From the NCBI GenBank assembly GCA_964106645.2, contig CAXKZF020000137.1: a stretch of 64,000 nt of DNA; one strand, written 5' to 3'. The notes under the pieces are model-generated. The model saw only the letters and a program-made list of their open reading frames with translations, was not told where the DNA came from and made no database searches. Position 1 is the stretch's first letter, and each line of letters starts with the position of its first letter. The position numbers and the translations under genes are program-made. Below are positions 13,262 to 53,565 of this stretch, one piece after another. This DNA comes from Podarcis pityusensis (taxonomy: Eukaryota).

Positions 13262-13423
13262 GAAACATGCCTCCCGCTAAGGGTGAGGTCTGCCACCGCA
13301 TTACCAACCGCTCGCCATTTCAGCAGTCCCGATCGACTTCGCCGCCTTCACGTTTCCTTCCCTGCCCGGCTTTGGCCTGCAAGGGTGCCGGGGTGGTCAT
13401 CTACCGGACCGCAAACTTGACCG
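13262..13423. repeat. 162-bp direct repeat, copy 1 (copy 2 at 48397-48558)
   Basis: gaaacatgcctccc...gcaaactt(g/a)accg; two substitutions seen; cut by the IS at 13424. Confidence 0.9.
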
Positions 13424-14732
13424 GGGACTGCTGAAGGTCTGGTTGTCACTTCCGGTTGGTGTTTCAGGCCGCGTGAGCGGCACGGTTGATGGTCTCAAAC
13501 TCGATCGGGGTGAGCTTGCCGAGGGCTCGTTGCCGGCGGCGGCGGTGGTAGGTCCGCTCGATCCAGATGACGATCGCCAAGCGGAGCTGGTCGCGCGTCT
13601 CCCAGCGTCGGCTGTTGAGCACGTTCTTCTGCAGCAGGGCGAAGAACGACTCCATGGCGGCGTTGTCCGCCGAGGAGGCGACCCGACCCATCGAACCCCG
13701 CAGGCCGTGCCGGTGCAGCGCGGCTACGTAGGGCCGGGAGCGGAACTGGCTGCCCCGATCCGCATGGACCACGCACCCGGCGACGACGTCGCGGCCGCGG
13801 CGGGCGATGGCCATCTCGAGGGCGTCGACTGCGAGGTGGCTAGTCATCGTCGAGTCGATCGAGTAGCCGACGATCCGGCGGGACCAGAGGTCCTTGACCG
13901 CGCACAGGTACAGCTTCCCCTGCGCGGTGGGGTGCTCGGTGGGGGCACCTCCCTGCACGAAGTGCTTGGGGGAATGTCGGTCAGCCACACCATGTTCGGG
14001 GCGGGTGCGGTGAAGTCCCGCTCCACGAGGTCGTCGTGCACCGGCGGGCCCGGCTTCATGGACCGACCCCGCTTCCTCGCGTGGGCGGAGACGATCCCGG
14101 CTTGCGAGCACACCTTCCACACCCGCCGCTCGGACACCTCGTGGCCGGCTTCGGCCAGCTCATCGGCGATGAAGCGGTACCCGAACCCCGGGTCGTCGCG
14201 GTGCACCTCGTGGGCGGCGTTGGTCGCGTACGCGTCGACCAGGTCCCGCTCGCTGACGGGGTGCGTACGCCAGGAGTAGAACGCCTGCCGGGAGAACCCC
14301 AGCAGCCCGCAGGTCACCGCGACGGGGATCCCGTCGGCGGCAAGGTCCAGGACCAGCGGGTAGGTCATTTTGGGGACTGGCCCAGCCTCAGGTTCGCCTG
14401 CGAGAGATACGCCGCGGCGCGGCGCAGGACCTCGTTTTCCTGCTCCAGCGCACGGTTGCGTCGTTTGAGCTCCTTCAGCTCCTCCGAGTCGGCCTTGGTC
14501 GTGCCGGGACGGATCCCGTCCTCGACATCAGCGGTCTTGAGCCAGTTCCTCAGGCACGACTCGGAGATCCCGAAGTCCTTGGCCAGCTGCGCGATCGGAA
14601 CTTCGCCCTTGCGGGCGAGCGCGACCACATCGTCACGGAATTCCTTGGGGTGGGGTGCAGGCATGTCGACATCCTTCCAGCGGGACCTCCCGGCCCCACA
14701 GAACTGGTGTCAACCGAACCTTCAGCAGTCCC
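13424..14732 (-). mobile_element. IS3-family element (orfA 14365-14664, orfB 13464-14368 disrupted)
   Basis: Terminal IRs gggactgctgaagg; orfA HTH; orfB DDE motifs WLTDI, HADRGSQF, DNAAMESFF. Confidence 0.92.
13941..13972. repeat. 32-bp REP-like hairpin insertion in IS orfB
   Basis: ccccc-aagcacttcgtgcagggaggtg-ccccc splits the conserved WLTDI/TEHPT motif and shifts the frame. Confidence 0.7.
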
Positions 14733-14748
14733 CTGCTACGTTCCGGTT

Positions 14749-15360
14749 GTGAAGTCACGATGGAAGTTCAGAGGGGTCCTAGTCTCAGCAGTGTTGTCCG
14801 CAGCCGCAGGGGTGGCCGCAGCTCCGACCGTGTCGGCAAATTTCAACGAGCAGGGGTGTGAGTACGGGGATCTCAAGCCGTGCCCCGCGAACAGCAGGCA
14901 TCACATCTTCTTCTACGGCGACAGCATGTCGAGCTCGGCGATCTTTTGGACCAACCAGACGCGCAGCGACAGTTACAACCAGGTGCCGGGTTGGTCCACG
15001 GCCACAACGGAGTTCCACGGCAGCTCCGACGTTCATATGATGCTCAGCCGCAACGGCGAGAACATGCCTCCGCGAGTGACTGGGTCCTACAACTGTTCCG
15101 AGATCGGATCGGGCCGCGTATGCGATCACGGGCATGTGCGAATCAGGGCCGATGATTTCGAGCAGCTCGCTGGGTCGCAGCGGCAGTCGATCCTCTGCCA
15201 CGAGATCGGCCACTCCGTGGGCCTGTCTCACCCTTCCGATGATGGTCAGGTCGATGACCCCAACGTCTTCCACTGCATGACCAACCGTTCCGATGTCTCC
15301 CCCGCGTTCCTGGGGTCTCACAACACCGGTCACATGCAGGACGAGAGCTACTACAACTAA
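14749..15360 (+). CDS. secreted zinc metalloprotease (metzincin/matrixin-like)
   Basis: Signal peptide, HEIGHSVGLSH zinc motif, Met-turn HCMT. Confidence 0.85.
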   Translation: MKSRWKFRGVLVSAVLSAAAGVAAAPTVSANFNEQGCEYGDLKPCPANSRHHIFFYGDSMSSSAIFWTNQTRSDSYNQVPGWSTATTEFHGSSDVHMMLSRNGENMPPRVTGSYNCSEIGSGRVCDHGHVRIRADDFEQLAGSQRQSILCHEIGHSVGLSHPSDDGQVDDPNVFHCMTNRSDVSPAFLGSHNTGHMQDESYYN

Positions 15361-15374
15361 AGGAAGTGCCCATC

Positions 15375-16016
15375 ATGAACAAGGCAGCACACCTTGTAAT
15401 CCCGTCCCTCCTAGCCGTGACGATGCTTGGTGGGTGCTCCTCCATCGAATCAGACGCGACGAGCGCGCCGTCGACGGTGTCTCAGCTTGGTGATGGCACC
15501 GACCCGGGTGTTCGCAGCTATTACGGGAAGGTCAGCGAGACGGTCTCGACCGTCGAGGAGGCCGGCGAGCACGTCACTGTCCTCGGCACGGTCCAAAGCG
15601 AGTCACACGGCACTCCAGGCGGTGAGATCGACTCCTTCACGACCATCCGCTCCATCACCGTATCTGTCGATGAGGTGCTCAACGGATCCCTCGCTGACAA
15701 GACGGTGACCGTGGAGAACGGGATGTACGAGTGGCGTGATGCCGGCGACACCAACGTCGCGAACGCCCTGAAGTACACCGAACCCGGTCAGCCGTGGCTC
15801 AAGCCCGGAGAGTCCGCGGTGCTGGTGCTGAAGAAGGTCGCGGCAGACAGCGGCATCGAGATCGTCGACTACCACAGCTTCGGCGAGGCGGGAACCTTCC
15901 GCGTGACAAACGGCAAACTCGTCGCAACTCCGCGCACCCAAGAGCTAATGTCCGCGCCCGGCCTACCCCACGAGCTCGTCGGCGACACCCCGGAGCAGGT
16001 CGAGCAGAAGCTGTAA
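15375..16016 (+). CDS. lipoprotein with predicted OB/TIMP-like fold, paralog of 41698-42330
   Basis: Lipobox LGGC; TVLGTV, VSVDEVLNG, LKPGESAVLVL pattern. Confidence 0.7.
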   Translation: MNKAAHLVIPSLLAVTMLGGCSSIESDATSAPSTVSQLGDGTDPGVRSYYGKVSETVSTVEEAGEHVTVLGTVQSESHGTPGGEIDSFTTIRSITVSVDEVLNGSLADKTVTVENGMYEWRDAGDTNVANALKYTEPGQPWLKPGESAVLVLKKVAADSGIEIVDYHSFGEAGTFRVTNGKLVATPRTQELMSAPGLPHELVGDTPEQVEQKL

Positions 16017-38518: not shown

Positions 38519-39107
38519 TGCCCTCAACCCAGACCCCGACATCATCGCGAGAAGTGCTCCTCAAAGGCACCAGCAGGTCGTGTGCTCGGTCAGAGAGAGC
38601 CTCCCACTCCGGGTCGAGGAGCTGCACCGCGAAACTCGACCCGGCGTGGTTGCAGTCCCAGATCAGGCCTCCGCGCCCGACACCGGTCCCCGTGATGCAG
38701 CGCCCCGCGTGCCCGAGCGCCAGTGCGAAGTCAGCGTCGTCGTCGGGGTCGAACTGATGCAGGTCGTGGTAGTCGAGCTCCATCTCGAGGAACTCGAGGC
38801 GACTACGCACCGCCGTGAGGGTCTCGGCCCCCAGCCACTCGGAGACGGCTGCCTGGCTGTCGTCCCCAACGGTGAACCACTTACGTCCCCTTCGCTCCCG
38901 GACGCGTCGCGTCACAGCACCCTCGGCGAAGGGCCACACCGCGAAACCCGCTGCCATGACGAGGAACCACCACCGGGCCGTCGGCGACTCCGCGGCGACC
39001 GCGCTAGCCAGCGTGAAAGCCACAGCTACGCCGATCGCTAGACCCTCCACGACGCTCTCCCCGAACCCTTCCCCGCTGCGCCAGCGGGAGTGGTCGTCGC
39101 GGATCAC
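38505..39107 (-). CDS. hypothetical membrane protein
   Basis: Two TM segments; GTGA coupling to the resolvase stop. Confidence 0.55.
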   Translation of the reverse strand: MIRDDHSRWRSGEGFGESVVEGLAIGVAVAFTLASAVAAESPTARWWFLVMAAGFAVWPFAEGAVTRRVRERRGRKWFTVGDDSQAAVSEWLGAETLTAVRSRLEFLEMELDYHDLHQFDPDDDADFALALGHAGRCITGTGVGRGGLIWDCNHAGSSFAVQLLDPEWEALSDRAHDLLVPLRSTSRDDVGVWVEGNAGS

Positions 39108-39757
39108 AGCGCGGTCCCCTTATTCGCGGGCTGACCATCGCCGCGGTACAGCGGCAACGTGCCCTCCTCCGGCCCGGCATCGAACCTCGCCAGCGACGCG
39201 ATCTCGCCACGCAGGACCCGCCCGACCACCGCCCGGGACAACCCCGTCGTCGACGCGATCACACCCTGAGTCTTGCCCGCCTCGGCCATCTCGTGCACGA
39301 GCCGGAACTGATGAGCCGTGACCCGCGACGGCCGCCCCAGCGGTCCCCCCTTCGCCCTGGCCGCAGCCAAAGCCGCACGAGTGCGCTCAGCAGTCATCTC
39401 CCGCTCGAACTGCGCCACCGACGCCATGACGTGGAATAGCAGCCGTCCACCCGGTGTGGTCGTGTCCAGCGACTCCGTCAGAGAGCGGAACTCCACCCCG
39501 CGGGTGCCGAGCTCGTCAACGACGCTGATGAGGTGCTTGAGCGACCGGCCGAGCCGGTCGAGCTTCCACACCGTCAGCACGTCCCCCGGCTCGAGGCGCT
39601 CGAGCAACCGGGCCAGGCCCGGGCGGTCCGTACGCGAGCCTGACGCGTGGTCGGTGACGATGTGCTCGTCGTCGACGCCCGCCCGACGCAGCGCGTCGAA
39701 CTGCATCGCCGTGTCCTGGTCGAGCGTGCTCACCCGCGCGTAGCCCCACTCAGTCAT
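39104..39757 (-). CDS. serine recombinase (resolvase/invertase family)
   Basis: GYARVST..Q, DRPGL, VWKLDRLGRS, AQFER, GRP, C-terminal HTH. Confidence 0.95.
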   Translation of the reverse strand: MTEWGYARVSTLDQDTAMQFDALRRAGVDDEHIVTDHASGSRTDRPGLARLLERLEPGDVLTVWKLDRLGRSLKHLISVVDELGTRGVEFRSLTESLDTTTPGGRLLFHVMASVAQFEREMTAERTRAALAAARAKGGPLGRPSRVTAHQFRLVHEMAEAGKTQGVIASTTGLSRAVVGRVLRGEIASLARFDAGPEEGTLPLYRGDGQPANKGTAL

Positions 39758-39887
39758 CGCTGGTCTGCTCCCGCTCACGACGAGCCCGCTCACGGCTCTT
39801 GTTGAGCCGCGGATAGACCCAGAAAGTGCCTGCCAAGCTGCCGATGGAGGCGCCCACGAAGGCCCACGGGTTGATGTACTCCGTCAT
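39750..39887 (-). CDS. small membrane peptide
   Basis: MTEYINPWAFVGASIGSLAGTFWVY plus basic tail. Confidence 0.4.
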   Translation of the reverse strand: MTEYINPWAFVGASIGSLAGTFWVYPRLNKSRERARREREQTSDD

Positions 39888-39944: not shown

Positions 39945-40068
39945 TGCTCGAAAGTCGCTAGTTTTCAACCTTTCGAGCAACATTATCAGTGAGCAGGGGT
40001 TTCGAACGCCTTTCAGAGCCTCCCGCGGCCCCTCCCCCGGGCTGCTCGAAAACGATCGTCACTGAGCC
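39945..40068. other. res site 1 (site I at 40043-40068 plus accessory subsites)
   Basis: tgctcgaaaacg-AT-cgtcactgagcc; IR tgctcgaaag-N15-ctttcgagca; directly upstream of the resolvase. Confidence 0.75.
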
Positions 40069-40161
40069 GTGCTGGATGCCCGCCTAGAATTGCGGGCATG
40101 GCGCGCCCTCGGGCATTCGACCTGCGTGACGTCGCCGCAACAGAGGTGCACGCTGCACCAC

Positions 40162-41533
40162 TGGGGCCTGACCCCGGTTCTTGGACACGCTGAATCCAGC
40201 ATCTGCTGGGGAAGCGAGATGATCGAGGGACCATGGCCAGGAAGAACTACTCCGAGGAGTTCCGTCGTCAGGCCGTCGACTTGTGTGAGTCCACGCCGGG
40301 GGCCACGGTCCGCGGTATCGCTGAGGACTTGGGCATCGTGCGCGGCACGCTGCGTCAGTGGCTCCAGGCGTACGGGACGGGCAAGAAGACCGCTGCCGAC
40401 GGGACGGCGACCTCCAGCCCCTTGCAGTCCAAGGCAGCGCCACCGGGGCCGAGCGAGGAGGAGTCGCTCGAGCAGCGGGTGGCTCGGTTGGAGGCCGAGA
40501 ACGCGACGCTGAGGGTGCAGGCGACGAAGCTGACCACCGAGCGGGAGATCCTGCAGAAGGCGGCCAAGTATTTCGCCGGGGAGACGCGCTGGTGAGTCGC
40601 TTCCAGTTCGTCGCCGACAACTCCGCCACCTACCCGGTGAAGCGACTGTGCGAGCTCCTCGAGGTGAGGCGCTCATCGTTCTACGCCTGGCAGGCAGGCG
40701 CACCAGCCAGGACCGAGCGGGCTGCGGCGGACGCCGAGCTCGAGACTCGGATCCGCAAGGTCCACACCGCCGACAACACCGTCGGAGCCCCGAGGATCAC
40801 TGCCGAGCTCAATGACGGGGTCCCCCAGGGCGAGCGGGTCAACCACAAGCGGGTGGCGCGGGTGATGCGCGCGGCCGGGATCACCGGATACGTCAAGCGA
40901 CGCAAGGTCCGCACGACCGTGCCCGAGCCGGCCGATCGGAAGGTGCCTGACCTGCTCAAGCGCGACTTCACCGCCACCGCGCCGAACCGGCGCTACGTCG
41001 GTGACATCACCTACCTGCCGCTGTCCCAGGCAGCCGGCGGTGGGAATCTCTACCTCGCGACCGTGATCGACTGCTACTCCCGTCGCCTCGTCGGCTGGGC
41101 CATCGCCGACCACATGCGCACCGAGCTCGTCGAAGACGCACTCAAGGCCGCCGCCACGACCAGAGGATCACTCGCTGGGGCCGTCTTTCACAGCGACCAC
41201 GGGTCGGTCTACTGCTCGAAGGACTACGTCACACTCTGCAGCACGCTCGGCGTCGCTCAGTCCATGGGCGCCGTCGGCTCCTCGGCCGACAACGCGCTGG
41301 CAGAGTCGTTCAACGCCGCCCTGAAGCGAGAGGTCCTCCAGGACGCCAAGACCTGGCCCGACGAGCTCACCTGCCGCCGGCAGACATTCAAATGGCTCAC
41401 CCGCTACAACACCAAGCGCCGCCACTCCTGGTGCCGCTACAACACGCCGATCACCTACGAGATCGCCGCCACCGCTACGCTGCAACCTGCTGCGTAATCA
41501 CACCCCGTGTCCAAGGACCGGGGGTAGGGCCCA
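40162..41533 (+). mobile_element. IS3-family element (orfA 40233-40595, orfB 40592-41497)
   Basis: TG..CA imperfect IRs containing cttggacacg; YVGDITY, HSDHGS, DNALAES. Confidence 0.95.
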
Positions 41534-41697
41534 CTGGATCGGTCGATGGAACTGGTCACCCATCACTACTCCGCCTAACTTGAGAGTTCGGCCTTGCCGG
41601 GCACATCGAGTACAAACCGGCCTCGCGCTCGTCCGTTGGGTCCAAGATGTATCGCAGGGGCGCGGTGCGTCCCGCACCATCTAGTTTGGGAGTCACC

Positions 41698-42330
41698 GTG
41701 ATCGCTCGACGTCATCGCGCCTTTCCCGTAGTCGTCGCCATGGCAGTGCTGGGTGGGTGCTCGGCCAGCGCGTCAGAACCGGCGCGCGGCTATGCCCCGT
41801 CAGGCGAGACCACTGAGGTGACGGACCCTGATGTGAGCGCCTACCAGGGCAGGGTCTTCGACTCGGTGACGTCGTTGGCTGAGGCGCGCAAGCACGTCAC
41901 GATCTTGGGCACCGTCCAAAGCGAATCCCACGGGGCTCCCGAGGGTGAGATCGATTCCTTTACGACTGTCCGCTCAATCACCGTGGCGGTCGACGAGGTG
42001 CTAGATGGGTCGCTCACCGCAGGCTCTATCACTGTTGAGAACGGGGTGTACGAGTGGGGAGCCCCTGGCGACAACGACGCAGGTACTGCCAGGCGCTACA
42101 CAGCGCCGGGTCAGCCGTGGCTCGAGCCGGGCGAATTGGCAGTCTTGGTGCTGAAGAAGGCTCCCGGCGGAGGGTCTGTCGAATACCACAGCTTTGGTGA
42201 GGCCGGAACCTACCGCGTCACGGACGGCAAGCTGGCTGCATCACCAAGGTCCCCCCAGTTGTTGTCGGTGCCAGGTCTCCCCCACGAGCTGGTCGGAAGA
42301 ACCCCGGCCCAGGTGGCAGAGAAGCTGTAG
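41698..42330 (+). CDS. lipoprotein, paralog of 15375-16016
   Basis: Lipobox LGGC; long identical blocks such as LGTVQSESHG, GEIDSFTT, YHSFGEAGT, PGLPHELVG. Confidence 0.75.
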   Translation: MIARRHRAFPVVVAMAVLGGCSASASEPARGYAPSGETTEVTDPDVSAYQGRVFDSVTSLAEARKHVTILGTVQSESHGAPEGEIDSFTTVRSITVAVDEVLDGSLTAGSITVENGVYEWGAPGDNDAGTARRYTAPGQPWLEPGELAVLVLKKAPGGGSVEYHSFGEAGTYRVTDGKLAASPRSPQLLSVPGLPHELVGRTPAQVAEKL

Positions 42331-42370: not shown

Positions 42371-42485
42371 TGCTCACTGACGATGGTTTTCGAACGGCGA
42401 CACTCCATGTGCGGGGGTCGGCTCAGTGGGTTGTTCGAAAGTCGCCGCATAGAGATTCGAAAGGGCGGTGATCGAGATTCGAGCA
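42371..42485. other. res site 2, inverted relative to res site 1
   Basis: tgctcactgacg-AT-ggttttcgaacg followed by gttcgaaag, ttcgaaag and ttcgagca subsites. Confidence 0.7.
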
Positions 42486-42539: not shown

Positions 42540-43301
42540 CTAGCGCGCTCCGCCGACGTTGATCAGGGAGCCAACCTCAACGCGTGCATTGTGCTGCTTG
42601 CTAGCGCTGCGCGAAAGTTCGTGAGCCTTCGTCGCGTCTACTGGTCTGTTCAGCGTCACCTCGACGTCGTGGCACATGCCTGTGATGCTCGCGCTCTTCA
42701 CCATGTGGCCGTCGATCCCGTCTGTCAGCAGGTCGTCGGCGATTGCTCGGCGCTCGATCATGGTCGGACCCCGTGTGAACGAGACCGGGTAGGGGAAGTT
42801 CTCTTGGTCTGCGTAGGTCTGCAGCCGCTGTGCCTCCTCGTCGCCCGATCCGCCGAGCTGGATGACTAGCCCGTCGGTGGGGTCGGCCCAGTACAGTCCA
42901 CCGAAGGTCGACCCGGGTCGTGTCTTCTCGGCGGCTGTGAGGCGTTGTGCGAAGGAGTCGACGACGTCGAAGTTTGTGCCTAGGCCGCTCGTGCCCTCCG
43001 GGGTTCTGTTCGCTGCCGCATTGGGCTGGCAGGTTGGCGCCTGAACCCAAAGGGGTGCCGAGCCACCAGCCGCGGTTGAGATCGGGGTACCGCTTCGGGT
43101 TGGCTCGACAGGCGCAGAGACGGCGAGCACCGTAATCAGTGCGGCTGCGGCGGCCCCACCCCCGACGGCTGCAACGCGTCGCTTCTGCCGTCGGCGCGCT
43201 GCCGCGTTGAGGATGTCGCCGAACGGGGGAACGTGGTGACGAGCCAGCCCGGCCTCGCGGTCGATGAGCTCGCGGACGTCGTGGACGGACGGGGTGCTCA
43301 T
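42540..43301 (-). CDS. anti-sigma factor candidate with protease-prodomain-like extracellular part
   Basis: TGATG-coupled to ECF sigma; cytoplasmic helix, RRRQKRR, single TM, FGGLYWAD..LVIQL domain. Confidence 0.7.
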   Translation of the reverse strand: MSTPSVHDVRELIDREAGLARHHVPPFGDILNAAARRRQKRRVAAVGGGAAAAALITVLAVSAPVEPTRSGTPISTAAGGSAPLWVQAPTCQPNAAANRTPEGTSGLGTNFDVVDSFAQRLTAAEKTRPGSTFGGLYWADPTDGLVIQLGGSGDEEAQRLQTYADQENFPYPVSFTRGPTMIERRAIADDLLTDGIDGHMVKSASITGMCHDVEVTLNRPVDATKAHELSRSASKQHNARVEVGSLINVGGAR

Positions 43302-43781
43302 CAGGCTTCTCCTAGGTGCGTGCGCAGAGCGGTGCGGGCTCGTGACAGACGCGACTTGACGGTGCCCACGGGTACTTCGAGGTCTGCCGCGATCTCGTCG
43401 TCGGTCAGCCCGAGCGCGGCGTGACGGACAAGGACTTCGCTGTGCAGGGGTGGCAGGTCGAGCACGGCCTGCCACACCTCTCGGAGGCGGACGTCGTCAG
43501 GGGCGGCGCCGCCTTGCAGGTCTGGGTCGAGCATCGGCCGTAGCCGATGTCGACGGCGTGCGTCGTCGATGGCGAGGGCGGTACCCCACGGTGCGCAACC
43601 ACGCCACCGGCCGCTCGTACCGAGAGACCTTGTTCCAGTGCAGGACGAGGCGGGTGAACGTCTCCTGTGCGCAGTCTTCCGCGATCGCGCGCGACCCGCA
43701 CAGGACGGTCAGCTCAGCGACCAGGCGGGGGTAGTTGGCCGTGTAGAGCTGCTCGAGCTCAGCGGCCTGGTTCGTCCTCAC
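43301..43781 (-). CDS. ECF sigma factor (SigE/ECF39-like), frameshifted near 43530-43580
   Basis: AEDCAQETF..HWNKV, WLRTV, EIAADLEVPVGTVKSRLSRAR. Confidence 0.85.
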
Positions 43782-43789
43782 ACCTGTAA

Positions 43790-43817
43790 GACGCCGGCGA
43801 AGCGCAATCGTTCCATC
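43790..43817 (-). promoter_or_regulatory. ECF promoter GATGGAAC-N16-CGTC
   Basis: 8 nt before the GTG; same geometry at 45748-45775. Confidence 0.7.
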
Positions 43818-43876
43818 GGGGATCAGTTTGGTCGATCATCCCGACTGCTTGTTCGCCTCCTACAACCGGCCAGACC

Positions 43877-43902
43877 GGCTCACAACCGATCGTCATTGAG
43901 AA
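43877..43902. other. isolated res site I copy
   Basis: ggctcacaaccg-AT-cgtcattgagaa. Confidence 0.55.
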
Positions 43903-44066
43903 GATTCCGAGAGCGCCCTTCCCAGGCATCGGTGAAGACGATTTACCCCCGCCGATCACCCGTGAGGTGCGACGCTGTGCGCATGAGCTAAGGGGCGGGA
44001 CGGGGCGAGCTCAGCGAACGGCAGCACGGCGGACCGGCAGGGGCGATCGTTATCCCTGGGTGGGTC

Positions 44067-44291
44067 ATGGTCGCCTTGGCACTTGCATCGTTGGTGGTCG
44101 CGGCGCTCGGCGCCCAGGGGCTGCTCTCTGACGATCCAATCCTCGACGAGGGTCGGACGGGTCTGGCCCTAGTGCTATTAGTTGCAGTGTCCCTGTGCCA
44201 GGGCGCGATGAACCTCTTGAACTGGCGATTGCAGCAGCGCCGCATAAGCGACGAGGAACCTGCCCCAGTTCAGTCTCAATTCAGGCTCTGA
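44067..44291 (+). CDS. small membrane protein
   Basis: Two hydrophobic helices. Confidence 0.45.
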   Translation: MVALALASLVVAALGAQGLLSDDPILDEGRTGLALVLLVAVSLCQGAMNLLNWRLQQRRISDEEPAPVQSQFRL

Positions 44292-44322
44292 CGCCGTGCG
44301 AGCAAGAGACGCCCTCGACGCG

Positions 44323-44347
44323 TGCTCAGTGACGATCGTCGTGAGCG
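44323..44347. other. isolated res site I copy (hybrid arms)
   Basis: tgctcagtgacg-AT-cgtcgtgagcg. Confidence 0.65.
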
Positions 44348-44422: not shown

Positions 44423-44941
44423 TTACTGACCCACGTCGAAGTACCCGATGACCGTCACGCCGTCGCTGCGGTAGACCGGCAGCCAGTCCACGGTCGGGGT
44501 GGGGATGGGCTCATCGAGGCTGGTCGGTGCGGGCTCCGCAGCCATGAGCTCGGAGTTGCGGAGGTACCCGTTGGCACCGTTCGTCGCGACCGCGGCGATG
44601 AGGTCGGGGGTGTTGGCCTCTGACGTCGAGTGGAGGTCGGTGCCGTACGACTCGCCCCGAGCATTCACTCCTGAGGCTGCTCTTGCGCCCTCGGAGTCCT
44701 CTTTGGGGAACGGGCGCCCGTTCGCAGGGGTGGGTGCAGGTCGAGCGGTGATAGTGACCGACACCGTCTCCCCACCGTCCGGCCCCATGTGAGTGGTCGG
44801 TGTTGTTGTCGGCGGTGGCGTCGTAGATCGCGCCGGAACAGCCACTGTCTCGCCGCCGCTTGCTACCGCCGCTCTCACTCCTGCTAGTGCTAGGACCGCT
44901 GCTGCCCCAGCGACGAACAGGCCCAGATTCCTATTGTTCAT
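44423..44941 (-). CDS. secreted/anchored protein with domain resembling the C-terminus of some BlaR1/M56-associated proteins
   Basis: NARGESYG..PDLIAAVATNGANGY..PVYRSDGVTVIGYF. Confidence 0.65.
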   Translation of the reverse strand: MNNRNLGLFVAGAAAVLALAGVRAAVASGGETVAVPARSTTPPPTTTPTTHMGPDGGETVSVTITARPAPTPANGRPFPKEDSEGARAASGVNARGESYGTDLHSTSEANTPDLIAAVATNGANGYLRNSELMAAEPAPTSLDEPIPTPTVDWLPVYRSDGVTVIGYFDVGQ

Positions 44942-45067
44942 CTCATCCCCCTGCCATCGGTACGGCGATACTCCTCGCGCCATCGCCTAGGAGCAAGGCC
45001 TCGAGATGGGGAGCACTACCCGCCGAATTGGCCGGAACCCTTAGCGGTTGCTCACGCTGACTGCTCT

Positions 45068-45580
45068 TTGCCTTCCATCACTGTGTTGCCAGCGAAGGTG
45101 GCTCCCGGTGGGTCCGTCACAGTCATAGGAAGCGCCTTCGGGACCGCGTGCAACGACGTCGGCCCAACTACGGAGCCAGCCCTTGGTGATCCCGCGATCG
45201 ACATCGACTTGATCCTGAGCGCTGACGGCAGCTCATCGACCCTTCTCACGGTCGACGCCGACGCTGACTACGCCTTCACCCAGCGCGTCACTATGCCTGC
45301 CGACGTCACCGGACCTGTGGAGATCTACGCGACCCTCGCCGAGGGCTACGACACGGACCCGGTCGCCCTCACGATCCAGGGGGTGCAACCCCCAGTCGCC
45401 GCGCCCTCAGCATCCACCGACGCCGCTCGGCCAGCTGTCGTCCAGACCGACTCTCCTCCCAAGAGCAAGGACAACGGGCCGGTTCTCCTGCTTGGTGGCG
45501 CATGCGCCATCGCGCTGATCGCAGCCGCCCTCGGCATCAGCCGCTCCCGTAGGCAAGGTGCGTCGCGTCCTGCCCACTGA
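45068..45580 (+). CDS. surface protein with C-terminal PAVVQTD-TM-basic tail; signal peptide damaged
   Basis: Ig-like VAPGGSVTVIG segment; upstream in-frame AHA-DC cleavage-like site without a start codon. Confidence 0.6.
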   Translation: MPSITVLPAKVAPGGSVTVIGSAFGTACNDVGPTTEPALGDPAIDIDLILSADGSSSTLLTVDADADYAFTQRVTMPADVTGPVEIYATLAEGYDTDPVALTIQGVQPPVAAPSASTDAARPAVVQTDSPPKSKDNGPVLLLGGACAIALIAAALGISRSRRQGASRPAH

Positions 45581-45643
45581 CGATCGTCACTGAGCAGGCT
45601 GCTGCCCCCTGCTTGCGTCCCATTCGACGATCGTCACTGCACG
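45571..45643. other. two tandem res site I copies
   Basis: tgcccactgacg-AT-cgtcactgagca (45571-45596) and tcccattcgacg-AT-cgtcactgcacg (45618-45643). Confidence 0.65.
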
Positions 45644-45747: not shown

Positions 45748-45775
45748 GATGGAACCAACCGCTCGCCTCAGCGTC
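45748..45775 (+). promoter_or_regulatory. ECF promoter GATGGAAC-N16-CGTC
   Basis: 8 nt before ATG 45784. Confidence 0.7.
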
Positions 45776-45783
45776 ATATGGGC

Positions 45784-46266
45784 ATGAAGCTGCAGAACCG
45801 TGAGGGCTTGGCGGAGATCCACGCCGCCTTCTACCCCCGCCTGGTGGGTGAGCTGACCGTGGTGGCCGGCTCCCGCGCCTCGGCTGAGGACTGCGCTAAC
45901 GAGGCGTTCACCCGGCTGGTGCTGCACTGGAACAAGGTGTCGAAGTACGACAGTCCCATTGCCTGGCTACGCACCGTCGGATACCGGCTAGCGGTCGACG
46001 AGCAGCGACGAGCACGCCGTCAACTGGCTGTGCCTGATCACGAACCCTCCTCGAGGACCGGCGAGGACTACCCGCACTCGCACGAGATTTGGCAAGCGAT
46101 CCGCGACCTGCCCGTCAGCCAGCGTGAGGTCGTGGTCCGCCGAGCCGTGCACGACCTCACCGACGCCGAGATCGCCGAAGAACTCGCCGTGCCTATCGGA
46201 ACCGTCAAGTCGCGCCTGTCCCGGGCGCGCACCACTCTTCGCTCTCGTCTAGGAGAACCGTCATGA
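45784..46266 (+). CDS. ECF sigma factor (SigE/ECF39-like)
   Basis: AEDCANEAF..HWNKV, WLRTV, LPVSQREVV, EIAEELAVPIGTVKSRLSRAR. Confidence 0.92.
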   Translation: MKLQNREGLAEIHAAFYPRLVGELTVVAGSRASAEDCANEAFTRLVLHWNKVSKYDSPIAWLRTVGYRLAVDEQRRARRQLAVPDHEPSSRTGEDYPHSHEIWQAIRDLPVSQREVVVRRAVHDLTDAEIAEELAVPIGTVKSRLSRARTTLRSRLGEPS

Positions 46267-47027
46267 GCAGTCCCGATCTCGATGCCGTCCGCGCCCTCAT
46301 TCACGACGAAGCTGACCGTGCACGCCGAGACGTGCCCTCGCTGGACTCATTCATCGCGGCCGCGAGCACCCGTCAGCGCCGCCGCCGCCACGCAGCGCTG
46401 GGCGCGGTCTTGGGAGCAGCGGTCGTCGCTGGTGGGGTGGGGCTGACCGTTCAAGGGGGTGACCAACCCGCGGTCGTCAACGTCGCCTCGAGCCCGTCAT
46501 CGTCCTTCCAGTCCGCCGGCGCTGACCTCCCCGCGCATCCCCGTCCGGACCAGGTCGCAGATCACCTAGCCGAGACGCTTAACGGCCAGGGCCGCAACGG
46601 CGGCGCGACGTGGATCTCCGAGAAGAAGACACTCAACATCTACGTCTCTGGGCCTGCAGGCGGCAAGGACGCCGCAGTCGAGAAGACCCAGGCCCTGGGC
46701 GATGAGCTGACCAGTACCGTCGACTTCACCGTCACGGTGCACGCGGGGGGTCTGCGCTCGGAGGCGCAGCTGGTCTCGACGATGGAGGCCGTCGCCGACA
46801 CCAAGAGCTACGACCCGAGCGGGACGGTGAAGGTCCGCTCCGAGGTGATCAACTACGAGACGGGGAAGGTCGCGGTCGACGTGACCAGCCAGGCCGCCGC
46901 CGACATCGTCGAGAAGAAGTTCGGCGACGCCGTCGAGGTCCAGGTCAAGGCCCCCTACACCCAGGAAGAGATCGAGGAGATGTTCGGCGTGCTGTACAAG
47001 AAGGGCACCCCCGACCACGACTTCTAG
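46263..47027 (+). CDS. anti-sigma factor candidate; extracellular domain is a copy of the neighbouring protease propeptide
   Basis: ATGA-coupled to sigma; RQRRRR + TM; C-terminal ~150 aa align with the pro-region of 47101-48327. Confidence 0.8.
   Translation: MSSPDLDAVRALIHDEADRARRDVPSLDSFIAAASTRQRRRRHAALGAVLGAAVVAGGVGLTVQGGDQPAVVNVASSPSSSFQSAGADLPAHPRPDQVADHLAETLNGQGRNGGATWISEKKTLNIYVSGPAGGKDAAVEKTQALGDELTSTVDFTVTVHAGGLRSEAQLVSTMEAVADTKSYDPSGTVKVRSEVINYETGKVAVDVTSQAAADIVEKKFGDAVEVQVKAPYTQEEIEEMFGVLYKKGTPDHDF
46736..46985. repeat. 250-bp inverted repeat, left arm (partner 47779-48028)
   Basis: About 5 mismatches by manual comparison. Confidence 0.95.
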
Positions 47028-47045
47028 TAGCGGTCTCCGTACGCG

Positions 47046-47087
47046 CGATGAAGGGCCGAGTGTGCACACGCTCGGCCCTTCATCGCA
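47046..47087. terminator. bidirectional terminator hairpin between convergent genes (coordinates approximate)
   Basis: gcgatgaagggccgag-tgtgcacacg-ctcggcccttcatcgc. Confidence 0.75.
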
Positions 47088-47100
47088 TCTATTGCCTGCG

Positions 47101-48400
47101 TCAGTACGTGGCCGGGTATCCACCGAGCTCGTTGGCGATCGTTGCCGCCCGAGAGAACCGCGCGAAACCGCCCTGCACAATGCACGAGTGCACCCCAAGG
47201 GCGACGTAGTCGCCGCTATCCGGGGACGCGGAATTCGGCTGCGCCACGGTGCCACCAGAGTCACCGCCCACGGTGCCGCTGATGTTGGTCGTCGTCAGCG
47301 GCACACCGCAGGTGCGATCGAAAACCGTGCGGACTTCACCCGTATGGACGCCGCTGTTCGCTCCCGAGACGAGCAGGGGCTGGCCCACGCTCATCGTGTC
47401 GTCCCACGCGGTGATCGTGCGGCTGTCGCTGCCGTACCTGCCGCCGATCCAGAACTCGTTGCGGACTGAGTAGCCGTTGGGGGGGTCGATGATGGCCCCA
47501 TCGACGTACTCATCGAACTGCCAGGTGGTGCCCGCCGAGGTCGCGATGCCGTACCTCGGCCACTCGTACCGGTAGTAGGAGCTTGTGCCGAAAGCAAAGC
47601 AGTGGCCCGCAGTCACTAGACGAACCTGGCCTCCGCTGACCCACTTCAAGCCGGTGGTGCAGTTCGCGGTGTCCCCAGCGCCAGCGTCTGGAGTGCAGTC
47701 TCCGGTGGTCTGGACACACATTGCTGTGCCTCCATTCCACCCGTTGCTGGGCGAGTCGTTCCGGCGGTTCTCGACCTGGAACATCCTCTCGATCTCTTCC
47801 TGGGTGTATGGGGCCTTGACCTGGACCTCGACGGCGTCGCCGAACTTCTTCTCGACGATGTCGGCGGCGGCCTGGCTGGTCACGTCGACCGCGACCTTCC
47901 CCGTCTCGTAGTTGATCACCTCGGAGCGGACCTTCACCGTCACGCTCGGGTCGTAGCTCTTGGTGTCGGCGACGGCCTCCATCGTCGAGACCAGCTGCGC
48001 CTCCGAGCGAAGACCCCCCGCGTGCACCTGCACCTTGACGTTGGACCCGCGGATCACCTCTGACACAAGCGTCTTGACCTTGTCCACAGCCGCGCTCTCG
48101 CCCAGGTCGGGGCCCGCCACGTAGATGTTGAGGGTCTCCTCCTCGGAGATCCACGTCGCGCCGCCATCGCGACCAAGGGTCTCAAGGGTGGCCTTGAGCT
48201 TCTCGGCGACCTGGTCAGGACGAGCAGCTCCCCACCTAAACGCCAGGGCCTCCTCAAAGCGGTCGATCTCCTCGACGGTCAGAGGACGGGTCGAATGGGT
48301 GATCTCGCGGGCGAGCTCCATCGTCATCGGCGGCTGAGGGTCGGTGTCGACAGCGGTGGCGGCGCCGCCAACGGCAAGAGTGGCGAAGGCGGCAGAGAAA
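47101..48400 (-). CDS. secreted S1 (alpha-lytic/streptogrisin-like) serine protease with propeptide; start uncertain, probable frameshift near 48398
   Basis: CTTG, VTAGHC, VDGAII, GGDSGG; in-frame signal-like FSAAFATLAVGGAATA upstream of the ORF-track start. Confidence 0.88.
47779..48028. repeat. 250-bp inverted repeat, right arm
   Basis: Reverse complement of 46736-46985. Confidence 0.95.
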
Positions 48401-48558
48401 CATGCCTCCCGCTAAGGGTGAGGTCTGCCACCGCATCACCAACCGCTCGCCATTTCAGCAGTCCCGATCGACTTCGCCGCCTTCACGTTTCCTTCCCTGC
48501 CCGGCTTTGGCCTGCAAGGGTGCCGGGGTGGTCATCTACCGGACCGCAAACTTAACCG
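48397..48558. repeat. 162-bp direct repeat, copy 2
   Basis: Matches 13262-13423. Confidence 0.9.
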
Positions 48559-48768
48559 CCACTGCCTCGATCTCAACGGTGCAGCCGTACGGCAGCTCGC
48601 TCACCCCGATGAACGATCGTGCGGGGCGCGGCTCGGCGAAGTGCTCTATGAAGGACGAGTTCGCTTCGTCTCGAAGTGAGACGTCCGTTGCGTAGTACAC
48701 CGTCTTGACGACGTGCTCCAGGCCCAGCCCGGCCAGGGAGAGTCGAGATTCAAGTTTGCGAAGGGCTG
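48536..48768 (-). pseudogene. RidA/YjgF family 3' fragment
   Basis: LEHVVKTVYY..FAEPRPARSFIGVSELPYGCTVEIEAVA. Confidence 0.8.
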
Positions 48769-48896
48769 CGTCGACGGTGTCTCAGCTTGGTGATGGCACC
48801 GACCCGGGTGTTCGCAGCTATTACGGGAAGGTCAGCGAGACGGTCTCGACCGTCGAGGAGGCCGGCGAGCACGTCACTGTCCTCGGCACGGTCCAA
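48769..48896 (+). repeat. 128-bp exact copy of internal part of lipoprotein gene (15469-15596)
   Basis: No mismatch seen. Confidence 0.92.
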
Positions 48897-49408
48897 TGGG
48901 GCTGTGCATGATCCAGTGTCTGCGGGCCGCTGGGGTGAGCGAGATCGTCGTCTCCGAGCCCTCGCAGGTCAAGCGTGAGGTCGCCCTGGCCATGGGAGCC
49001 AGCGCCGCCATCGACCCCAGCGAACGCGGCGCGCTGCAGCGTGAGGTCGCTGCCCGCACGGACGGGGTCGGGGCGGACGTCGTCATCGAATCGGTCGGCA
49101 TCACCGCGACCTACCGTGAGGCGCTCGAGGTGGTCCGCAAGCGCGGGAAGGTCATGTTCTTCGGAGCGGTGGTCCCAGATATCGAGCTGCCCTTGCTGCG
49201 GATTCTGCACCGCGAGCTTGAGCTCATCGGATGTACCGGGGCCAACGACGAGACAGCCGCCGCGATCGCGGCGTTGGCGGACGGTACCGTCGACCTGTCG
49301 GCCATCCCGCGCGCCACCGTCGGGCTGGCTGATACCGAGGCTGGTCTGGCTCACCTGGCAGATCCCGGCTCTGGAGTCGTCAAACTTTTCATCAACCCGG
49401 CCGGTTGA
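48897..49408 (+). pseudogene. zinc-binding dehydrogenase (MDR) 3' half
   Basis: VSEPSQVKRE, GADVVIESVG, VKLFINP; N-terminal domain absent. Confidence 0.8.
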
Positions 49409-53365: not shown

Positions 53366-53565
53366 NNNNNNNNNNNNNNNNNNNNNNNNNNNNNNNNNNN
53401 NNNNNNNNNNNNNNNNNNNNNNNNNNNNNNNNNNNNNNNNNNNNNNNNNNNNNNNNNNNNNNNNNNNNNNNNNNNNNNNNNNNNNNNNNNNNNNNNNNNN
53501 NNNNNNNNNNNNNNNNNNNNNNNNNNNNNNNNNNNNNNNNNNNNNNNNNNNNNNNNNNNNNNNNN
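53366..53565. other. assembly gap (200 N)
   Basis: Run of N. Confidence 1.

Follow-up and report, generated by a model that had tools for sequence, protein, structure and literature searches.

The window analysed here, the whole stretch of 64,000 nucleotides from contig CAXKZF020000137.1 of the Podarcis pityusensis assembly GCA_964106645.2, contains a three-gene locus. A gene for an ECF sigma factor is coupled by an ATGA overlap to a 3' gene for a protein with one hydrophobic transmembrane (TM) helix, and this pair is convergent with a protease ORF (47101-48327, minus strand) (Table 1). Layout, coupling and the intervening hairpin lie where the initial annotation had placed them. The hairpin is likely a bidirectional terminator, and its counterpart is present in two of the related loci described below, G56 and L001.

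Table 1 Features of the sigma/TM protein/protease locus and of its paralogous cassette (positions are those of the window)
Feature	Position	Strand	Comment
ECF-type promoter motif GGAAC-N16-CGTC	45751..45775	+	just 5' of sigma start; one of two matches in 64 kb
ECF sigma factor, 160 aa, SigE-like	45784..46266	+	Pfam Sigma70_r2 and r4_2
TM protein gene	46263-47027	+	ATGA overlap with sigma
Putative anti-sigma N-domain, cytoplasmic, aa 1-44	46263..46394	+	Arg cluster at end
Single TM helix, aa 45-63	46395..46451	+	Kyte-Doolittle 2.04; next-best window 0.51
Ectodomain, pro-region N-domain	46542..46736	+	60-65% nt to protease copy
Ectodomain, pro-region C-domain (gene-conversion tract)	46737..46985	+	98% nt to protease copy
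Variable short C-terminal tail and stop, in place of maturation junction	46986..47027	+	different at every locus
Hairpin between convergent genes	47045..47086	.	20-bp arm, z=-6.2
Mature S1 (alpha-lytic-like) protease domain	47101..47760	-	putative maturation site
Catalytic residues	His53 47602-47604, Asp87 47500-47502, Ser168 47257-47259	-	
Protease pro-region, inverted repeat arm 2	47779..48222	-	
N-terminal extension and remnant hydrophobic core of signal peptide	48223..48396	-	no start codon, no N-region
162-nt repeat	48397..48558	.	IS-end-like motif at 48454-48465; copy at 13262-13423
Paralogous cassette: ECF promoter motif, frameshifted ECF sigma, TM protein (43301-42540)	42540..43814	-	

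All named relatives recovered by homology searches belong to Janibacter. The window DNA is that of Janibacter, and the contig probably represents a bacterial contaminant in the lizard assembly. Run X1 is probably the source sample of the contig and therefore provides no independent support for the locus. The initial annotation had left room for an arrangement unique to this assembly, but the triad occurs in three independent genomes. The complete chromosome of Janibacter sp. G56 encodes the sigma factor, the TM protein and a convergent protease of 444 aa at 83% DNA identity to the window, and a plasmid of J. melonis M714 carries all three genes, with an unrelated gene inserted between those for the TM protein and the protease. 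A search for related loci among 185,579 GTDB species genomes returned one hit, G56; among plasmids only M714 was found, and scans of JGI metagenomes and viral contigs found none. The architecture is real and recurrent, and narrow, being confined to Janibacter in the genomes, plasmids, metagenomes and viral contigs searched.

According to Pfam the sigma factor carries regions 2 and 4 only; it scores 116 bits against TIGR02983, below the cut-off of 141.6. The N-domain of the TM protein (aa 1-44) is common to sigma-coupled TM proteins bearing unrelated ectodomains. Six of its 14 members match NF052375 'antisigma' (best E 5e-4), all below threshold, as is a match to NF038083; a PDB search with the N-domain gave no match. 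Further TM proteins with this N-domain and other ectodomains are found in L005 (16053-19850), L001 (5292-6442) and P0014, and some such ectodomains are shared with adjacent secreted genes (e.g., window 44423-44983). Shuffling of ectodomains on sigma-coupled TM proteins appears to be routine. P0041 is a natural frameshift fusion of sigma factor and TM protein.

The motif GGAAC-N16/17-CGTY has only two matches in the 64 kb, one before each of the ECF genes. In the loci compared it also precedes most of the homologous sigma genes and none of the protease genes, which leaves the sigma-TM operon as the evident target. The copy at the present locus is probably autoregulatory and would give rise to a leaderless or short-leader mRNA. 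Direct control of the protease gene by the sigma factor was considered and is unsupported. A scan for sigma-70 promoters and terminators gave nothing informative.

The protease has the motifs AGHC, D-x-A and GDSG, with the His53/Asp87/Ser168 triad intact; the His and Ser motifs are invariant among the aligned homologues, and the Asp is present in six of seven. The best PDB matches of a mature-domain profile were T. fusca protease A (2PFE, E=1e-4) and alpha-lytic protease, whose entries rank after 2PFE with E values of 0.03 and above. The initial annotation described a secreted S1 protease. The S1 assignment holds, but the window copy, compared with G56 and P0007, has neither a start codon nor a signal N-region, and no in-frame start was found 5' of the hydrophobic core of the signal peptide. 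Homology to G56, which keeps a full signal N-region at this point, ends at about 48396. Beyond it follows the 162-nt repeat, 99% identical to its second copy in the window, which has taken the place of the protease promoter, start codon and signal N-region, so that the window protease is probably not secreted and the locus, with a 5'-truncated enzyme gene, is probably sensor-only. A contig of run X1 extends 30 nt beyond the junction at 48397, the bridging rule being 31 nt. The proteases of G56 and M714 have intact signal peptides. An out-of-frame ATG near 48400 was considered as the result of a one-base frameshift and rejected, since this ATG is part of the inserted repeat. The 128 nt at 48769-48896 are identical to 15469-15596, within a lipoprotein gene, and the region 48400-48900 as a whole is a mosaic of fragments.

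The ectodomain of the TM protein aligns with the protease pro-region at 72% amino acid identity over 166 aa (E=1e-76), and the two coding segments form a 444-nt inverted repeat (46542-46985 and 47779-48222) with 84% identity overall. This bears out the proposal of the initial annotation that the ectodomain is a paralogous copy of the pro-region; we also agree that the homology stops just short of ENRR/NDSP and leaves the TM protein without a catalytic domain. A feature missed in that annotation is the distribution of differences between the arms, of which the distal 249 nt hold only 5 out of 73 (hypergeometric P=4e-22). We divided the alignment of pro-regions, comprising TM and protease copies from three genomes, at codon 65. 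Sequences of the proximal part group by gene type (support 1.0), with 60-65% nucleotide identity between TM and protease copies, whereas those of the distal part group by genome (support 0.99), with 97-100% identity within and 83-90% between genomes. Since within-genome identity in the distal part includes third positions (97-99%, versus 76-83% between genomes), it points to homogenisation at the DNA level and not to convergence, and indicates that the distal 249 nt are kept matched by gene conversion. In each of the three genomes the boundary falls at about codon 65, which is also the border between N- and C-domains in the AlphaFold model of the ectodomain (pLDDT 86). Between genomes, dS amounts to 1.1-2.0 for the mature proteases, 0.08-0.34 for the sigma factors and 0.2-0.4 for the shared tract, and these three pairs suggest that exchange went both ways and that sensor modules were newly combined with older alleles of the protease. 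Gene conversion alone is no proof of function; neighbouring inverted repeats are expected to homogenise without selection.

Searches of Pfam and NCBIfam assigned neither the ectodomain nor the protease of the window to a family. The Pfam profile of the alpha-lytic pro region (PF02983) did not match the pro-region, an atlas lead reached only 0.77, and a single-sequence PDB search gave no match. The ectodomain model resembles the alpha-lytic pro region in both domains (Foldseek probability 0.97; VIA Z 7.3, rmsd 7.1 for 4PRO), but is tied with KH-type folds, so homology to that pro region rests mainly on position in the zymogen. An AlphaFold model of the zymogen had a pLDDT below 50 in the catalytic domain and was not used.

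Contigs of run X1 tile the locus at a depth of 5-8x and its unitigs break at the repeat, as might be seen if a contaminant contig of low coverage had been misassembled to give the near-identical copy. The complete replicons of G56 and M714 refute this, as they share the layout and each has its own distinct tract sequence; the triad is therefore no artefact, and we consider the residual probability of one negligible. At window position 46955 run X1 and a strain run, X2, have A in place of C, and the assembled sequence may thus understate the similarity of the TM copy to the protease copy. An N gap is located at 53366-53565.

The arms are in frame as well as inverted, and share identical runs of 132-225 nt. 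Recombination between arms of about 250 nt could in principle flip the tail, the terminator and the catalytic domain, and so place a membrane-anchored protease on the anti-sigma factor while a free propeptide is secreted. In one JGI contig, L017, the protease signal and proximal pro-region do run into the TM tail, and the catalytic domain is attached to the other arm; yet this contig measures 1.8 kb, contains frameshift errors and may reflect an arbitrary route taken by the assembler at the repeat. The orientation of the window is also that of both complete replicons and of L001, searches revealed no TM-pro-S1 fusion protein, and the joint is absent from the run contigs, which cannot phase the repeat. 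An invertible switch is very improbable.

Two further Janibacter protease lineages possess a tethered copy of their own pro-region. In lineage 2, seen in L007, the genes for the sigma factor, the TM protein and the P0018 protease stand in tandem, and the ectodomain is 68% identical in nucleotides to the pro-region of its own protease, with no recent conversion. The paralogous window cassette (42540-43814) is an orphan of this lineage: its TM ectodomain has 49% identity to the P0018 pro-region (E 2e-58), and a lineage-2 protease is not adjacent. The sigma gene of this cassette (43300-43781, minus strand) has a frameshift near 43540, and in L008 its close homologue was likewise called as two separate genes. 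Lineage 3 has pro-only copies that are lipoproteins or signal-anchored proteins. In L015 a protease is followed by a pro-only lipoprotein, and another pro-only gene is identical over 127/127 nt to a protease gene of J. melonis, the two coming from different samples. Within the triads, as one would expect from the initial annotation, the ectodomain matches the protease of its own locus best, and pro-only proteins match the protease of their own lineage only.

The lineage-3 copies have, on the contigs seen, no anti-sigma domain and no adjacent sigma gene. They could speak for an immunity protein, i.e., a tethered inhibitor or in-trans folding helper that binds the protease while the sigma factor answers another envelope cue and merely co-expresses the ectodomain. 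The co-folding result given below is equally compatible with such a role. We nevertheless regard it as unlikely, because lineages 1 and 2 fuse the pro-domain to a conserved sigma-coupled N-module, relatives of which carry other variable ectodomains.

Sigma factor and TM protein frequently occur without an intact adjacent protease (L001, L005, L009 and L012). No protease gene adjoins the pair in J. terrae, L005 or L009, and in a strain 97.6% identical over the locus the sigma factor and TM protein are kept but the protease is reduced to its last 81 codons. Together with the lack of an ECF motif before protease genes and the 5' truncation in the window, this weakens the quorum-like loop through the cell's own protease that had been suggested initially, and makes a self-quorum circuit doubtful. 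Sensing of, or immunity against, a protease of kin or neighbours would fit the gene content better, the enzyme apparently having been lost repeatedly and the sensor retained.

The surroundings of the locus are modular. A palindromic site centred on GACGATCGTC is found at gene-module boundaries, both ECF cassettes included (window 40041-40069, 42371-42388, 43875-43903, 44113-44136, 44320-44340 and 45569-45640), and also in L001, L005, L008, L009 and L016. A serine resolvase is encoded at 39104-39793 and likewise near a GACGATCGTC site in L001; the resolvase probably uses these sites for crossover within a variable array of modules. An IS3-family element with 32-nt terminal inverted repeats occupies 40158-41537. 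In G56 (L004 1532-9155) a Tn5053-like mer transposon with TniABQ, resolvase, MerA-like reductase and MerR lies directly upstream of the triad. A family-1 TM protein (P0009/P0035, Logan) has a matrixin-like HExxH segment fused after the pro-domain, which resembles a matrixin-like gene in the region 14650-16016 of the window; that gene is followed by a lipoprotein gene homologous to 41647-42330.

Co-folding of the ectodomain with the mature protease scored 0.86 versus 0.39 for the best control, with contact agreement of at least 84% and partner pLDDT of at least 87, a mark that 51 of 78 solved pairs reach, as do 2 of 108 mismatched ones. In agreement with the binding proposed in the initial annotation, the model places the ectodomain on the protease hairpin (141-152) and the active-site region with His53, Asp87 and Ser168; here the folding model may be reproducing the solved alpha-lytic:pro complex. 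Conservation of the interface offers a partly independent check of the predicted binding, bearing in mind that some residues may be conserved for the fold. Of the 13 predicted contact positions in the N-domain, which lies outside the converted tract, 10 show the same residue in TM and protease copies throughout the three genomes, compared with 17 of 52 positions elsewhere (p=0.005), and predicted interface residues of this domain are preferentially conserved among TM proteins (p=0.003).

These conservation patterns, and the pairing in three lineages, argue against a chance recruitment, in which the duplicated pro-region would serve as a generic protease-sensitive ectodomain, its identity to the protease copy being due to neutral conversion and the protease being no longer a specific ligand. 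Some observations are in keeping with that explanation: sigma factor and TM protein outlive the protease, dN/dS of the C-domain (~0.4, versus 0.13-0.2 in most other segments) is compatible with relaxation, and the G56 TM copy has an 8-aa deletion within the tract. On balance we rate it slightly lower than the immunity protein.

We favour a three-part protease-sensing module with a receptor and inhibitor of the RsiV type, with a probability of roughly 0.55. The N-terminal helices of the TM protein would hold the ECF sigma factor at the membrane, and outside the cell the catalytically empty copy of the pro-region is predicted to clamp the cognate mature S1 protease as a propeptide inhibitor. By analogy, the bound protease, or clipping of the bound propeptide, would trigger regulated intramembrane proteolysis and free the sigma factor. 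This in turn would activate its own operon and supply more tethered propeptide as a surface inhibitor against the own or a kin protease. Gene conversion between the inverted copies of the pro C-domain, as seen in the three genomes, would keep the receptor matched to the adjacent protease allele. Tentatively, one may go further and picture a self-updating receptor, an anti-sigma factor that senses and neutralises a kin-specific protease and is re-tuned to new alleles by conversion and possibly occasional inversion; this extension is possible but rather doubtful, and if true would permit allele-specific detection of kin or competitors.

If the sensing module is confirmed, it would reveal a simple route for the origin of an enzyme receptor, by copying the inhibitory propeptide of the enzyme onto an anti-sigma anchor and matching it by conversion. 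To our knowledge, the ligand has been established for few ECF systems; in the present case the neighbouring gene predicts it, and three natural alleles permit direct tests of cross-specificity. The module has been seen only in Janibacter, is frequently decayed and is known from sequence and predicted structure. It suggests that other unnamed ectodomains of actinobacterial anti-sigma factors are perhaps copies of parts of their targets.

As the initial annotation supposed, the architecture seems undescribed: a literature search, whose coverage left out most subscription papers, found no account of it. Pro regions function in trans and also inhibit (10.1101/2020.08.30.274340). Like those of alpha-lytic proteases (PF02983; 2PRO/4PRO), the Janibacter pro-region is situated between signal peptide and S1 domain and is predicted to have two alpha/beta domains; unlike them, it has a second copy that is stand-alone and membrane-tethered, and it does not match PF02983. 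Stand-alone propeptide-like proteins exist elsewhere, namely the subtilisin-propeptide-like I9 inhibitors. Neither among these nor among PepSY proteins do we know of a fusion to an anti-sigma domain or of matching by conversion. PepSY proteins such as Streptomyces SspA (PMC4282423) also have a propeptide fold outside a zymogen; both groups differ from the Janibacter ectodomain in fold and in the protease families concerned.

Anti-sigma-I factors of the RsgI type in Clostridium thermocellum are likewise modular and use sensor domains taken from secreted enzymes, RsgI9 for instance having one that resembles an S1C peptidase (PMC12203970). They differ in the class of sigma factor and in the N-terminal domain, and sense polysaccharide by catalytic or binding modules, with no propeptide involved. 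The closest parallel in operation is the RsiV-sigV lysozyme sensor of Bacillus subtilis, C. difficile and E. faecalis, in which the sigV promoter is induced on activation (PMC4183432). RsiV is a single-pass anti-sigma factor whose ectodomain directly binds an extracellular enzyme, as is predicted here. Its ligand is a host enzyme and its ectodomain is unrelated, whereas the Janibacter ectodomain derives from the propeptide of its presumed ligand, which is encoded next to it and homogenised with it by conversion. The locus proteins match no RsiV-related family in Pfam or NCBIfam; the locus would most plausibly work like RsiV, without being homologous to it.
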